Below, one piece after another: positions 37,535 through 42,560 of a stretch of 64,000 bases of DNA; the first letter of the stretch is position 1, and every line of letters begins with the position of its first letter. Origin of the DNA: Mytilus californianus. Lineage: Eukaryota. The notes beneath the pieces are model-generated. The model did not search any database and had not been told where the DNA came from. It worked only from the letters and a program-made list of their open reading frames with translations. The DNA lies in the NCBI RefSeq assembly GCF_021869535.1, contig NW_026262679.1, positions 99,944,001-100,008,000 on the forward strand, read 5' to 3'. The translations under genes and the position numbers were made by a program.

Positions 37535-38190
37535 CAACAATACAACAACAACAACAACAATACTTTATTTTAAGAGGGTTAATTACACAGTTAGCTATAT
37601 ATCTAATCTTCCCTGAGGCCCTCATCATAAAAAATAAAACAAAATGCAAACATATACATTGCATACATTAGTATAAAAAACAAGTATGATAATAATGTTC
37701 AATACAACTTGATAAAATGTTATGAAAAAATAAACGTGATGACATAATCAGTTTTCAATATTTTTTATACAGCTAGGTTGATTTCAATAAATTATCTGTT
37801 ATTTTGTATTTGAAAGAATTAACATTTGTAATATTTCTTAACGGTATTGGCAAATACCACAAGAATGGTCCAGAATACATAAAAGATTTTTTGAACAATT
37901 CTGTTTTTGGTTTAGGGAGTATGAGGTTTCTTTGAATAGCATTTCTCTAGGGGTATGGATTTCTGTCTGAAACATAATGAAACTTGTTAGTAAGATATGA
38001 TGGTGCGTCATTTTTGATGCACTTAAATGTCATCACAAACTTGTGATATTTTATTCTCTGTTCAACTGTCATCCAGTTTAAGTGTTTGAATAAGGGCTCG
38101 GAAGGAGCGAAAGGGTCTGTTTCTAGTATTAATCTAGCAGTTCTCTTTTGTAATTTTAATATCCTATTTAAACCCTCACTGCTACAACTA
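37535..38190 (-). mobile_element. CR1/L2-group LINE, 3' part (RT C-terminus, 3' UTR, (TTG)n tail)
   Basis: SCSSEGLNRILKLQKRTARLIL...LFKHLNWMTVEQRIKYHK; ends AAATAAAAGTATTGTTGTTGTTG on the minus strand. Confidence 0.8.
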
Positions 38191-38623
38191 ACGTAAATCG
38201 TCCCGAAGTCGTCATGGGTCCGCACTTTCTAATACAATGTAATGACATGACGACCTTAAGACGCAATGTAAATAGGTAATCATGCAGAAAAAATATTCAG
38301 GATTCGATATTTCTTTAGTATGAGGCCGTCAAACATTCGGAAATATGGTAATTTATCGTCTAAACTACACAGGGGAAAGCAAGACGACTTCCGGACGGTC
38401 ACGTCTGTAAGTCGTCACATATCACGTCCATTGGTCGTCATGTAATATTAGCCCGTCTTTAGGTCGTCAACTCATTTCTTTTTTGAAAAAAATAGTCAAC
38501 ACAAAATCAAATGAACTCTTATTATTGTTCATTATTCACAAACTAAGTTTTGCAGCAATTATTTCACAAAGTAAACACAATTTTCATGAAAAAGTACACT
38601 TTAAATCCAGTAAACATAGTTAA

Positions 38624-39014
38624 TTATGAAGCAATTATAGAAACGCACTGATGGGACTTGACTACTGTTCTAATTTCATCCTCACTATCGTCTTCTCCTT
38701 TAAAAGTAAGATGACACAGCTGCTGTGGCCCCGTTTTTTCTTGATTTAACTTCACTCGGCTCTAATGGTCTTATTACATAGCGCGACTTTGCCAGATTGC
38801 GTTTTATCACCGACGATATAGCTGCAGCATATTCTCTCTTTAAGTTTCCAACCTTTCTAGAGCCATGGTAAATTGCAACTGCATTTGAGTCATATTTGTT
38901 TAACGGCTCTGCCTCCAAATGATAATTACAACCAACCGAAACTTCCCGTCTACCGTAATGATGCATACCAACTGCCAACAATGGTCTGATTGTGAACTGT
39001 TTCATTTTGGTATC
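38624..39014 (-). pseudogene. Stand-alone HIRAN-domain ORF carried inside the transposon, one frameshift
   Basis: MKQFTIRPLLAVGMHHYGRREV...YHLEAEPLNKYDSNAVAIYHGSRKVGNLKREYAAAISSVI matches the HIRAN pattern (EPxNxYDxNA...KxG); removing one A from the run at ~38734-38739 extends it to GPQQLCHLTFK...IIAS* (stop 38624). Confidence 0.7.
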
Positions 39015-39059
39015 CTGGAATACAAAAAAAAAATCAAAAGTCTAAAGTCATTTGTATCA

Positions 39060-40898
39060 ATAATTTGAGTAATACACAGTTAATAGCAAAATGGACACGA
39101 TACAGTACTGAGTAGAGATATATGTTGGTATGCAATTTGCATGGAATACACAGCTGCAAAAACACACATAAACGCAACATTGGATTCGGTGACGATACGT
39201 AGTCACACAAAACATTGGAATACGTCACCGCATGTGTTTGATTTTTTCAATTGTTTCTCATTCTTTGCTGTTTTACTTTTAATTTGTTTCAGTCCTCTCA
39301 ATCTTTTCATTTGTTCCTGTTTAGCCTTTTTTGTTTCCTCCTCAATACTTTTCTCTGTTTTTCTTTTCTCTCGAAGCTCCTTTCGTTTCAACTTGTTTTT
39401 CTCGTCTTCCTTTTTCTTTTTTTTCCTTTGAGTCGAGCTCTTCCTGAATCTCTTTTGTTGATAAAATCCTCGCTTTTCCGTCGCCTTTCTTCCTTTTTGT
39501 TCTACCAATTACATCTTTTGTTTTTGGCAAGACCAAGACCGAAACCAGATCGTCTGGAATTAGTCCAGCTTTAACTAAAGGATGAGATGATGGTTCAGGA
39601 CAGTAGGATGCTTGTACATTGAGAGATGAGGACGACACTGAATTTATACTTTCATTCGCCACATTAATTGGCAAAGTAGAATCGCTTGACGAACTAGACA
39701 AAGTACATGAGATCTTCAGGTTTTTCCATGTATGAAATACAACGTCACCCTTTATCATCGTATTGCTGGAAAATGCATTCTCATATTTACGCTTCTTACG
39801 AGGTGTCAAAGCGAATTCAATTGCTGACAATGCTAGTTCTGGTGGACATGTAGTTGTTCTAGATGGCTCAATTTCGTTTGACGATTTTGTAGCCTCAGAG
39901 TTAGTGTGGATTATAGGAGATAAAATACCGTCGGAACCAACTTCTAGGTCCATGACGGTTGTTACGCCCGTGTTACTTGTAGATGGCATCGCTGGTACTA
40001 TGTTATCTGGCTCGTTTTTTTCTGTATTAGATGTGCTATTGTCCTCAATAGCTGACAGTTCGGGTTCGTTCGTTGGTTCGTCCTTTAAAGACAAATCAAG
40101 GTCATCCGGGTTGACATCATTGCCCCCTCTGAACAGCAAAGTCTTGTCAATCGCGTTGGGATCAAAAGGATATATGCCACACTTTTTGAATCCTTGTGTA
40201 ATGCAGGCCATAGTGAAACTTCTCTCAAATATTACTTTAAAGATTGAGCTAACGTTTTTCTTTGATACCCACAGGTCGGTTTTAAGCATTTTCGCATTAC
40301 TAACTTGTTTTGCGGTTTCAATTTTCATATTTTTGTATACTGCTACATCCAAAGGTTGCAAAATATGTGTTGTTTTAGACGGTAGGTAAAGAAGAATGAC
40401 GTCATTCTTAAGAGCACTATCAATGAGCATCGGGCTGATGTGAGAGATAGCACCATCTTGCAATAGCATAATCGGACGTTCCTTTACACAGTGCTACAAG
40501 AAGACTTTTTCAAACCACTGAAAATATGTTTCCTTGTCCATGAAACCGCTGTCTGTTGAAGCGTATGCGGCGTTGATGGGCCCGTTATTATGGTATGCTC
40601 CTCCCGGGTATCCACCACTTAAGATAGGCATAGGTGGTAAAGAGTGTCCTGTGGCATTGACGCAGCAATGTACCGATATATGCTCACTTGTTGCAATGCT
40701 TATGGAATGAGCATGCTGGAAACGTTTTGGTACAACGACACGTTGACCAGAGCTTTTGCTTAGACTAAGACCTGCTTCGTCGCAATTATATAACCGTTCA
40801 GGCTTGTCCTTTCGATCATTAATTTCAAGAGTTGATTTAAGGAGCTTACAATAGTATCTCATAGTTTCAACATCTCCCAAAATGGGGGGATATGCCAA
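39060..40898 (-). pseudogene. pogo/Fot-like DDE_1 transposase, with C-terminal K/E coiled coil and possible PHD relic
   Basis: YNCDEAG, LPPMPI, GFMD...WF, LLQDGAISH, LPSKTTHILQPLDVAVY; 35 residues between the second and third D; one in-frame TAG at 40494-40496; no N-terminal HTH found. Confidence 0.85.
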
Positions 40899-41943
40899 AG
40901 AAACAACACAACCAAGGAAATAAAACTAAAGGCAACGAAAAAAGCCCAATCATAGGGACAGTTTAGTTGGACGTTAACGACTTTAACAAAACAGTATGAC
41001 AGTTCAACGAAAATATCCGCCGAACAAATCAATAAAGAACTAAGTCTAATGATAAGCAAGACATAAACCGTTTTCCGGCATGTCTGGTGTTTGATATCGG
41101 CGCATGCGGCAAATATCATAAACACTAGACAATAGACAATATTTTTTTTACTCAAACTCATTTACAGTAAATGGTTAAGGCATGACGAACATTTTAATCA
41201 TCATATATTAATGTTTTGTTTGAACTGTTTTCGACTAAGATAATACAATACTATTTGGTAACGATTCTAAAAAATAACACATGGTAAAAACAGATCCTAA
41301 AACAAAGCCTGTTTCCGGCGTAGTAATAAAGTTCCTTTAATTTTTTGGGGAAAACAGGTTTAACAAATATTTCCTCTACAAGACGAACAGACGGACTGTT
41401 GACATAGGAAAAGCTTCTTAACGATAATGTGAAGTAAAAGACGTTATTTGACTATTTTCTTGTATATTTGTGACGAATTGTTGGACATAACTATTGGAAA
41501 TAATTGGCAGACTTTAAGTCGTCAGTATCGTCTTAAAGTCGTCACCTCAGTTTCAGTCTATTTTTGGCTTGTTTGATGAAGTTAGGGAATTCCGTTTTTT
41601 TTTTCTAATTCAAGACAAACTATTTTTGGATAGAATGAACTTGGAAGAATTACGTCACTTTTCAAAATGGCATCGTACGGTACCATCGCCTAAAACATAC
41701 AAAATTTCAGGAATGCGTCGCCCAGCATGCCATCAATACCATTTTACCAAGGCCCCAAACATCCGACAATGGAGGCTACATGAACCTTAATTCTAATAAA
41801 GCAATAATAAGGAATAAAAATAGATAATTACGGCTTCAAAATAAACCGCTTCTGAACTTTGCCTCGTGTTGTATTAAGCGAGAATAACGCGTGATTTCCG
41901 GACGACGACTTTAGGCCGGTGACGACATAGGGACGGTGTACGT

Positions 41944-42560
41944 TACTCTACACTATACAACAATAATCAATTAGTGGCAAGATATAACCATTATAGAATA
42001 ATTTTCTGCAGTCTAGATTTAGAAATTTCTTAATCTTTAATAGTAGATATAGCCTAGATGAAATTTTTTAGCAGATCTCATCAATTTGGTTTGTCCATGT
42101 GAGGGAAGGGTCAGTTTTCATGCCTAAGAGACTTTCACATGTGCAAGATTGTATCACTTGATTGTTAATAGTTAAACAACTCTCATTGTAATGTGGCATT
42201 GCTTTTTGCTTTGTTCCAATAATCATATATTTTGTTTTTTTTTTATCTGTAAGAAATGGTAGTATGAATATCTTTTTTGATATAAGTGGAATCTTTTTCT
42301 TTTCTAGTTAAACAAACTGGATAATGATCACTTATTGAGAATTTAGCAACATGTGATTCTAGTATCAAATCTTTATTGGTGACATAAGCATGATCAATTA
42401 GTGTACTAGAATCAGGTGTAACTCTTGTTGCTTCTTGAATTATCTAGTTGAGATTATAGGTTTCTAATAAACTTAGCCATTTTTGTTTATTAGGTTTCAA
42501 AAAATCTATATTAAAATCACCAACTAGAATAATAGAATAACTATCAAAGAACGTGCTGCT
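41944..42560 (-). mobile_element. CR1/L2-group LINE, upstream part (APE endonuclease plus RT piece, internally deleted)
   Basis: IILVGDFNIDFL...TRVTPDSSTLIDHAYV...SDHYPV; then KTKYMIIGT...LTWTNQID...RKLFYNGYILPLIDYCCIV, continuing into 38190. Confidence 0.8.

Follow-up and report, generated by a model that had tools for sequence, protein, structure and literature searches.

A conserved HIRAN gene within the terminal inverted repeats of a Mytilus pogo transposon: a putative accessory protein for DNA 3' ends

A 64,000-nucleotide stretch of the Mytilus californianus genome (contig NW_026262679.1, positions 99,944,001 to 100,008,000; hereafter the window) carries a short open reading frame (ORF) coding for a HIRAN domain beside the remains of a DDE transposase. 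The question raised by this locus is whether the HIRAN gene was picked up by chance or belongs to the transposon as a working part, and which role such a protein might have in transposition. The gene lies at the following position:

38624-39005, minus strand: stand-alone HIRAN gene of 126 codons, with a +1 frameshift in the A-run at 38734-38739

The gene starts at an ATG (39005-39003) and ends at a TAA stop (38626-38624). It is a second ORF downstream of the transposase and on the same strand, as the first-pass annotation had described, located 74 nt past the transposase stop (39080-39082) and within the terminal inverted repeats (TIRs) of the element. The first piece of the gene (ORF 38700-39005, 101 aa, carrying EPLNKYDSNAVAIY and KVGNLKREYA) clearly matched the Pfam HIRAN profile PF08797 (E 6.9e-11; 42.3 bits against a cut-off of 24.7), so that the identity proposed from the letters alone was confirmed by profile, and also by the HIRAN fold of the structural model presented below. 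A one-base slip of the frame follows the A-run (38734-38739), and ORF 38624-38755 encodes the remainder of the protein, the two pieces of the frameshifted gene being analysed separately. Read across the slip, the protein matches end to end the intact 126-aa protein P0001 of M. galloprovincialis, which shared 86% identity with the 101-aa window ORF over 91% of the query (BLASTP). The homopolymer slip assumed in the first-pass annotation was thus recovered, while the length that had been given as about 127 aa is corrected to 126 aa by the match to P0001. Since contigs from sequencing runs X18 (the best DNA holder of the window stretch) and X1 have one A fewer at 38734, which leaves the HIRAN frame open, the frameshift may be an allele, a difference between paralogues or copies, or a homopolymer assembly error.

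The limits of the transposon were established by comparison with related copies, among them those of M. galloprovincialis (locus L006) and M. edulis (locus L007), and comprise the following features:

38189..38190: TA target-site duplication, 3' side in the minus-strand reading (homology end, empty-site joint)
38191..38218, minus strand: imperfect 3' TIR of about 28 nt, aligning with the 5' end as ACGTA.A.CGTCCC.A.GTCGTCA..GG
38191..38480, minus strand: 3' subterminal region with six GACGAC/GTCGTC motifs (motif count)
40879..40880, minus strand: internal deletion junction, with about 469 bp gone (comparison with L006 4515-4983)
40880..41943, minus strand: 5' non-coding leader, including the 5' TIR and five GACGAC/GTCGTC motifs (91-95% identity to the 5' regions of L006 and L007)
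41916-41943, minus strand: 5' TIR (TIR alignment)
41944..41945: TA target-site duplication, 5' side (empty-site joint, homology end, TIR alignment)

The element was placed at 38191-41943 (3753 bp, minus strand), with imperfect TIRs and TA target-site duplications, on the evidence of the homology ends, the TIRs with their TA, the empty-site joints and the restored frame of the surrounding retroelement. Homology to L001, L003, L004, L006 and L007 stops at one position (38187-38189); the opposite end is reached by L006 and L007 alone, where homology breaks off at 41945-41948, and both copies have the same element ends at other loci. An empty-site joint (38188 to 41944, with 2 ambiguous bases) was found in contigs of runs X3 and X18, which are copies of the surrounding non-LTR retroelement without the insertion, and excising the element together with one TA in silico restored the reading frame of this retroelement. 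DNA identity between the window element and the M. galloprovincialis and M. edulis copies was 93-94%. The GACGAC/GTCGTC motif occurs six times in 38191-38480, five times in 41518-41926 and once in between, a distribution that makes these motifs candidate transposase-binding sites.

The flanks of the insertion (37947-38188 and 41946-42400, minus strand) belong to a very abundant non-LTR retroelement, specifically to its C-terminal reverse-transcriptase region (translated as ...IDYCCIV-stop and SSCSSEGLNRILKLQKRTARLI...), and the depth of the run X18 contig was about 100x higher on these flanks than on the transposon. In the leader, a segment of 313 nt (41040-41352) is absent in L007, and L006 has a different, AT-rich insert of about 265 nt at the same point, so this point seems to tolerate or attract indels.

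The window copy is dead, being an internal-deletion derivative nested in a non-LTR retroelement. Relative to the fuller M. galloprovincialis copy (L006), the deletion of about 469 bp removed a splice-acceptor-like motif, the ATG and the HTH_psq/HTH_Tnp_Tc5 domains of the transposase, and no HTH domain was found in the window by tblastn. In runs X1 and X3, loose ends at position 40879 lead on into the missing coding sequence (...DPLDRGRAA, translated by eye), and undeleted copies therefore exist in related mussels. What is left of the transposase consists of four parts:

40494..40898, minus strand: N-terminal half of the DDE_1 core with the first catalytic D, in YNCDEAGL (Pfam DDE_1, E 2.2e-5; comparison with L006)
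39342..40469, minus strand: C-terminal half of the DDE_1 core with the second and third catalytic D, and acidic linker (Pfam DDE_1, E 3.6e-8)
39203..39508, minus strand: Lys/Glu-rich, coiled-coil-like transposase segment (ORF list; reached only via a frameshift in an A-rich tract)
39080..39230, minus strand: remnant of the C-terminal Cys-rich (C4HC3, PHD-like) finger, ending CPFCY-TAA (alignment with L001-L004)

In addition to the lack of an ATG and of DNA-binding domains, a TAG stop parts the two DDE fragments from each other, and more stops and frameshifts follow downstream, including a TGA and a frameshift in the finger remnant. The fragment 39342..40469 shared 64% identity with the L002 transposase and has 35 residues between the second and third D (DD35D); a D-107-D-35-D arrangement was found in L006 and L009, and all three aspartate motifs are present in the window, the catalytic residues having been assigned by motif. 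The continuous C-terminal piece of L002 matched the window in two frames (tblastn). HTH_psq/HTH_Tnp_Tc5 domains were found in L002, L006, L007 and L009, and an intact PHD-like finger in L006 (6620-6774) and L007, the C4HC3 pattern being present also in L002 (2410-2528); the C-terminal finger pieces of L002 and L006 gave no match to Pfam, and Pfam PHD is present in several related pogo transposases, including those of the bivalves Pinctada and Mya. With its DDE_1 core, the HTH_psq/HTH_Tnp_Tc5 domains of its relatives, its TIRs and its TA, the element is a member of the pogo superfamily, an assignment based on domains, motifs and ends.

Transposase genes were broken or truncated in all five Mytilus copies examined. 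In four of them the frame breaks inside one A-rich, Lys-coding stretch of about 100 nt, each time at a different position (about 39390-39470 in the window, about 7700 in L001, about 6450 in L006 and about 6440 in L007), and L002 and L009 read through it; the tract looks like a hotspot of indels or sequencing errors. A programmed frameshift at this tract was rejected because the site of the break varies among the Mytilus copies and the frame is continuous in L002 and L009. Separately, the reading frame is interrupted in the same way in L006 (4920-4985) and L007 (4940-5003), two copies from different assemblies, at a point between HTH_Tnp_Tc5 and the DDE core (translated as ...WWRGFKKDNPKYHLEDRIH and a stop); this suggests either that their common master was defective before they arose or that they were moved by a transposase acting in trans.

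The HIRAN gene was present in the other copies of the family, where it lies beside the transposase. In the 12 of 12 loci with enough flank, including loci from M. galloprovincialis, M. edulis and Tegillarca granosa, this HIRAN family was adjoined by a pogo transposase on the same strand (window, L001, L002, L003, L004, L006, L007, L009, L010, L011, L012 and L013). A word-based protein search yielded five HIRAN relatives (44-91% identity), and the other loci with the HIRAN layout were reached via the transposase. L006 and L007 show HTH domains, DDE_1, the coiled-coil-like segment and the finger, followed by an intact 126-aa HIRAN ORF, and the L006 HIRAN protein is 91% identical to the first 90 residues of the window HIRAN. 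The Logan contig L002 is a nearly complete copy, with a HIRAN 56% identical to that of the window; L009 has an uninterrupted transposase ORF of 726 aa and, 43 nt later, the start of a called 141-aa HIRAN gene, the product of which is 41% identical to the L002 HIRAN. The remaining loci are more fragmentary: L001 and L003 are truncated copies keeping the end of the transposase and HIRAN (the latter also frameshifted in L003), L004, from a hydrothermal-vent metagenome, comprises the end of the finger and HIRAN, and in L010 and L013 HIRAN is preceded by remnants of the transposase.

Both gene orders occur, since HIRAN lies upstream of the same-strand transposase in L012 (T. granosa, GCA_029721355.1), where a stop and a spacer of about 150 nt separate the two genes, and in L011. 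Three proteins with an apparent N-terminal fusion of HIRAN to the transposase (P0147, P0205 and P0231) proved at the DNA level to be a deletion derivative (L011) and spliced gene models; for this reason, and given the stop and spacer of L012, they were taken as evidence of gene order and not of fusion. As a control, the 31 generic HIRAN loci recovered from metagenomes, in a scan with alignment A3 that also returned one true family member, were inspected, and none (0/31) had a pogo transposase. Conversely, no HIRAN gene accompanies L008, a related pogo transposase that bears a PHD finger (46% identity); this type of transposase can therefore exist without it.

An exhaustive profile search returned 284 cluster representatives (clusters at 50% identity) at E<=1e-3 and 123 at E<=1e-10. 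Among the 150 matches listed, nearly all were stand-alone proteins of 105-150 aa; the few longer ones were gene models or deletion derivatives joining HIRAN to parts of the transposase, together with one host-type protein that has three HIRAN domains and an SNF2 domain. The Pfam HIRAN profile matched 65 of 79 family members. A 322-aa protein of M. edulis (P0277, in the cluster of P0132; profile E 6e-25) represents a second, more divergent HIRAN subfamily in Mytilus. ESM Atlas clusters of HIRAN-only proteins of 121 aa and 145 aa were labelled mostly as Porifera and Cnidaria, a lead from which the transposon-linked HIRAN family may extend well beyond bivalves.

The HIRAN ORF has been kept across lineages down to 36-47% amino-acid identity. 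Between lineages dN ranged from 0.2 to 0.8, with dS of 2-3.8 or incalculable, and omega was 0.05-0.12 where computable, the exact values between distant lineages not being meaningful at such saturation of dS. This comparison of copies, which the first-pass annotation had put forward as a check, showed purifying selection on the HIRAN ORF between lineages. The nonsynonymous rate of the DDE core was about half that of HIRAN (L002, L006 and L009), and distances based on HIRAN and on the DDE core ranked these three lineages in the same way, as co-inheritance of HIRAN and transposase predicts.

These data bear on the reading in which a host HIRAN fragment was captured once and has been carried along without function. 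The frameshifts of the window and L003 HIRAN genes are in line with it, as are the dN/dS values within Mytilus (0.2-0.7, once 2.3, on very few changes). It is nevertheless contradicted by the conservation data, namely by an ORF conserved at saturated dS and at the low identities given above, by its retention in both gene orders, by pocket residues that are among the best conserved, and by the size of the family (284 cluster representatives), and we regard it as extremely improbable. Judged from these loci, the HIRAN gene is a component of the family and not a one-off capture: a stand-alone HIRAN with a conserved pocket sits within the TIRs, is under selection and is co-inherited with the transposase. 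The earlier suggestion of a two-component transposon is supported by the ORF shared among family copies and by purifying selection; the proposed linkage to the transposon likewise held, although "accessory gene" describes HIRAN better than the original label of "cargo".

What the protein might do was approached through its fold. The AlphaFold2 model of the 126-aa HIRAN of L006, the sister copy, was built on a 79-sequence alignment and reached a mean pLDDT of 97.1 and a pTM of 0.89. The predicted beta-barrel with two helices superposes on solved HIRAN structures: the top 12 Foldseek matches were HLTF HIRAN (TM 0.71-0.74, E 2e-7 to 3e-6, probability 1.00), and the next were the bacterial HIRAN-like protein lp_0118 of Lactobacillus and then, weaker, K. 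lactis Rad5. In the structural alignment, identity to HLTF HIRAN was 22%. Profile alignment to HLTF placed H15-H16-Y17 on R71-Y72-Y73, N36 on N91, Y38 on Y93 and D39 on D94, and F101 was matched by eye to F142; D94 and F142 are residues that we take to belong to the 3'-end pocket of HLTF. Within the 79 members, position 16 is H in 94%, position 36 is N in 92%, position 39 is D in 95%, position 38 is aromatic in 73% and position 101 is F in 80%, so that the equivalents of the pocket are among the best-conserved positions of the transposon HIRAN family, and the pocket looks preserved.

Compared with the HIRAN of human HLTF (PDB 4S0N, 4XZF, 4XZG, 5BNH and 6KCS) and of yeast Rad5, the transposon protein shares the Pfam family and, in the predicted structure, the fold, and it conserves the equivalents of N91, D94 and F142, with an aromatic residue at the Y93 position in most members. 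It differs in being a bare domain, without SNF2 motor or RING, in having its own GPQQ motif and GMHH instead of GLRYY, and in being encoded in a mobile element, whereas HLTF is a host repair gene. In HLTF, one single-stranded dinucleotide is held in a cavity flanked by Y72 and Y93 (PMC4666394), and the domain binds the 3'-OH of single-stranded DNA, an ability disabled in the N90A-N91A mutant (PMC11237066). The transposon family departs from this pocket at two points, a near-invariant His replacing Y72 and a variable residue standing at the N90 position, and since Y72 is His here and N90 is not conserved, binding of 3' ends is a prediction for this family. The conserved pocket is compatible with all three roles raised in the first-pass annotation, namely binding to transposon 3' ends, targeting to replication forks and gap repair.

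We consider it moderately probable that HIRAN is a selected accessory protein of a two-gene pogo transposon, binding the 3'-OH ends made in transposition. The proposed element would encode, on the one hand, a DD35D transposase with HTH_psq, HTH_Tnp_Tc5, DDE_1, a coiled-coil-like segment and a PHD-like finger, and, on the other, a separate 126-aa protein consisting of one HIRAN domain as its second gene product. Tc1/mariner transposases make a staggered cut of 2-3 nt that leaves short 3'-OH overhangs on the element and on its flanks, as established for Tc3 and Mos1; the cleavage geometry assumed here for the pogo lineage is taken from this group. On that model, staggered cleavage would give both the excised element and the donor flanks short 3' overhangs, the HIRAN protein would bind the single-stranded 3'-OH ends of these overhangs, and binding would either protect the ends or deliver them to integration or to repair of the gap. 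A dinucleotide-sized pocket for a free 3'-OH would fit such overhangs, and we consider it most likely that the protein captures or protects the ends while transposition is under way.

The same pocket admits other uses. With DDE transposases, integration proceeds by nucleophilic attack of the 3'-OH at the transposon end, and a 3'-OH-binding pocket could mask this group: HIRAN might then be a regulator of its own element, capping the transposon ends, inhibiting strand transfer and keeping copy number or autointegration in check. The window copy and other deletion derivatives, which retain HIRAN and lose the transposase, would suit such a function, but a short ORF kept in dead copies is also expected by chance, and this reading appears very unlikely.

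Tn7 TnsE directs insertion to 3'-recessed ends in replicating DNA, and as an accessory protein recognising 3' DNA ends it may be a functional analogue of the mussel protein, although no relation in sequence or fold is expected and target selection by the mussel protein is purely hypothetical. By this analogy HIRAN would recognise nascent-strand 3' ends at stalled or active forks and steer integration there, an idea in accordance with the conserved pocket residues of the transposon family and with HLTF itself, in which HIRAN directs the protein to the nascent-strand 3' end at forks (PMC11237066; PMC4666394). The sole insertion available here is, however, at an ordinary TA site in a retroelement, and we judge target selection of this kind unlikely.

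A further reading, also drawn from HLTF, is that of a decoy acting against the host, where free HIRAN would compete with HLTF/Rad5-type proteins for 3' ends and thereby shield transposition intermediates from being dismantled or processed by the host, or bias the repair of the donor gap. The isolated HLTF HIRAN (residues 1-180) is dominant negative in vitro, blocking HLTF-dependent Cas9 removal and end resection, with a much smaller effect of the N90A-N91A form (PMC11237066), and the transposon protein is likewise a bare HIRAN domain. Its low identity to HLTF HIRAN (the 22% of the structural alignment) speaks against this reading, and action in trans would serve any element, so that strict linkage to one transposase clade is less expected; we hold it to be quite unlikely.

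Such a two-gene element would have to express both proteins, and the sequence before the HIRAN start suggests how this may occur:

39015..39035, minus strand: polypyrimidine tract followed by CAG, resembling a 3' splice site, 9 nt upstream of the HIRAN ATG

The spacer from the transposase stop to the HIRAN ATG measured about 70-90 nt in aligned copies, and the stop itself is kept in 4/5 of them (lost in L001). Between lineages the one part of this spacer that can still be aligned is a polypyrimidine tract with a terminal YAG, which lies 2-9 nt before the HIRAN ATG. Under a strict rule, an acceptor motif preceded the HIRAN ATG in five of seven lineages, compared with 1.6% of all ATGs in the same sequences, and a like motif precedes the transposase ATG in Mytilus, L002 and Tegillarca. 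Because a polypyrimidine-YAG motif directly precedes each ORF start, the pattern suggests that one leader exon may be spliced to either of two acceptors, giving two mRNAs; a single transcription unit would then yield both proteins, depending on which of the two 3' splice sites is used. When the 5' leaders were scanned against the donor consensus, no convincing splice donor emerged and the candidates were all weak; one of these (GAG/GTGACG at 41545, the slash marking the putative junction) is common to three Mytilus copies. In run X21, the single raw run used as RNA-seq, no reads fell on the element in the portion covered (about 6% of the run); the runs other than X21 behave like DNA.

A fusion of transposase and HIRAN by splicing out the transposase stop was considered unlikely, because the distances from the acceptor AG to the ATG (9, 4, 4, 2, 2 and 5 nt) differ between lineages by non-multiples of 3, and because there is no donor upstream of the conserved transposase stop that spares the PHD-like finger, any such donor destroying it.

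Two-gene DNA transposons are already known: PIF/Harbinger elements encode a transposase and a Myb-like protein, and the CACTA element En/Spm of maize produces TnpA and TnpD by alternative splicing. The mussel element resembles them in carrying a second conserved protein within its TIRs and, possibly, in using one transcription unit with a choice of splice sites, but its partner has a predicted DNA-3'-end-binding domain, whereas theirs is a sequence-specific DNA-binding protein. With the pogo superfamily (Tigger, pogoR, Passer and others; PMC7386202) it shares HTH_psq, HTH_Tnp_Tc5 and DDE_1, the 35-residue D spacing, the TA and the TIRs, and what it has in addition is HIRAN, its conserved second gene, and a PHD-like finger at the C-terminus of the transposase; in the parts of the 2020 pogo survey reached by term search (Gao et al., PMC7386202), neither a second ORF nor a PHD finger is mentioned. 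The literature searched, which excluded Repbase and subscription journals, included no paper in which HIRAN and pogo both appear and none that connects HIRAN with a eukaryotic transposase, in agreement with the first-pass annotation, which knew of no HIRAN as a described pogo component.

Tc1/mariner-pogo elements are usually treated as one-protein machines, and here one of them has a conserved HIRAN partner, the module that lets HLTF find the nascent-strand 3' end. This suggests that some transposon lineages manage their own DNA ends or manipulate the fork and break processing of the host, and such elements may also be a vehicle for the spread of HIRAN domains from one genome to another. The family of 284 clusters, which has no functional annotation past the domain name in the databases searched, offers a compact, natural 126-aa predicted 3'-end binder and poses a concrete question for gene-delivery tools derived from transposons. 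Tentatively, and with more doubt than confidence, these elements could be a widespread and so far undescribed class of animal pogo transposons in which a dedicated 3'-end sensor, made from the transposase transcript by alternative choice of 3' splice sites, has a direct part in the transposition reaction, either by capturing the 2-3-nt overhangs or by TnsE-like steering to forks. If this were true, it would be the first eukaryotic cut-and-paste element known to have its own DNA-end-recognition factor.
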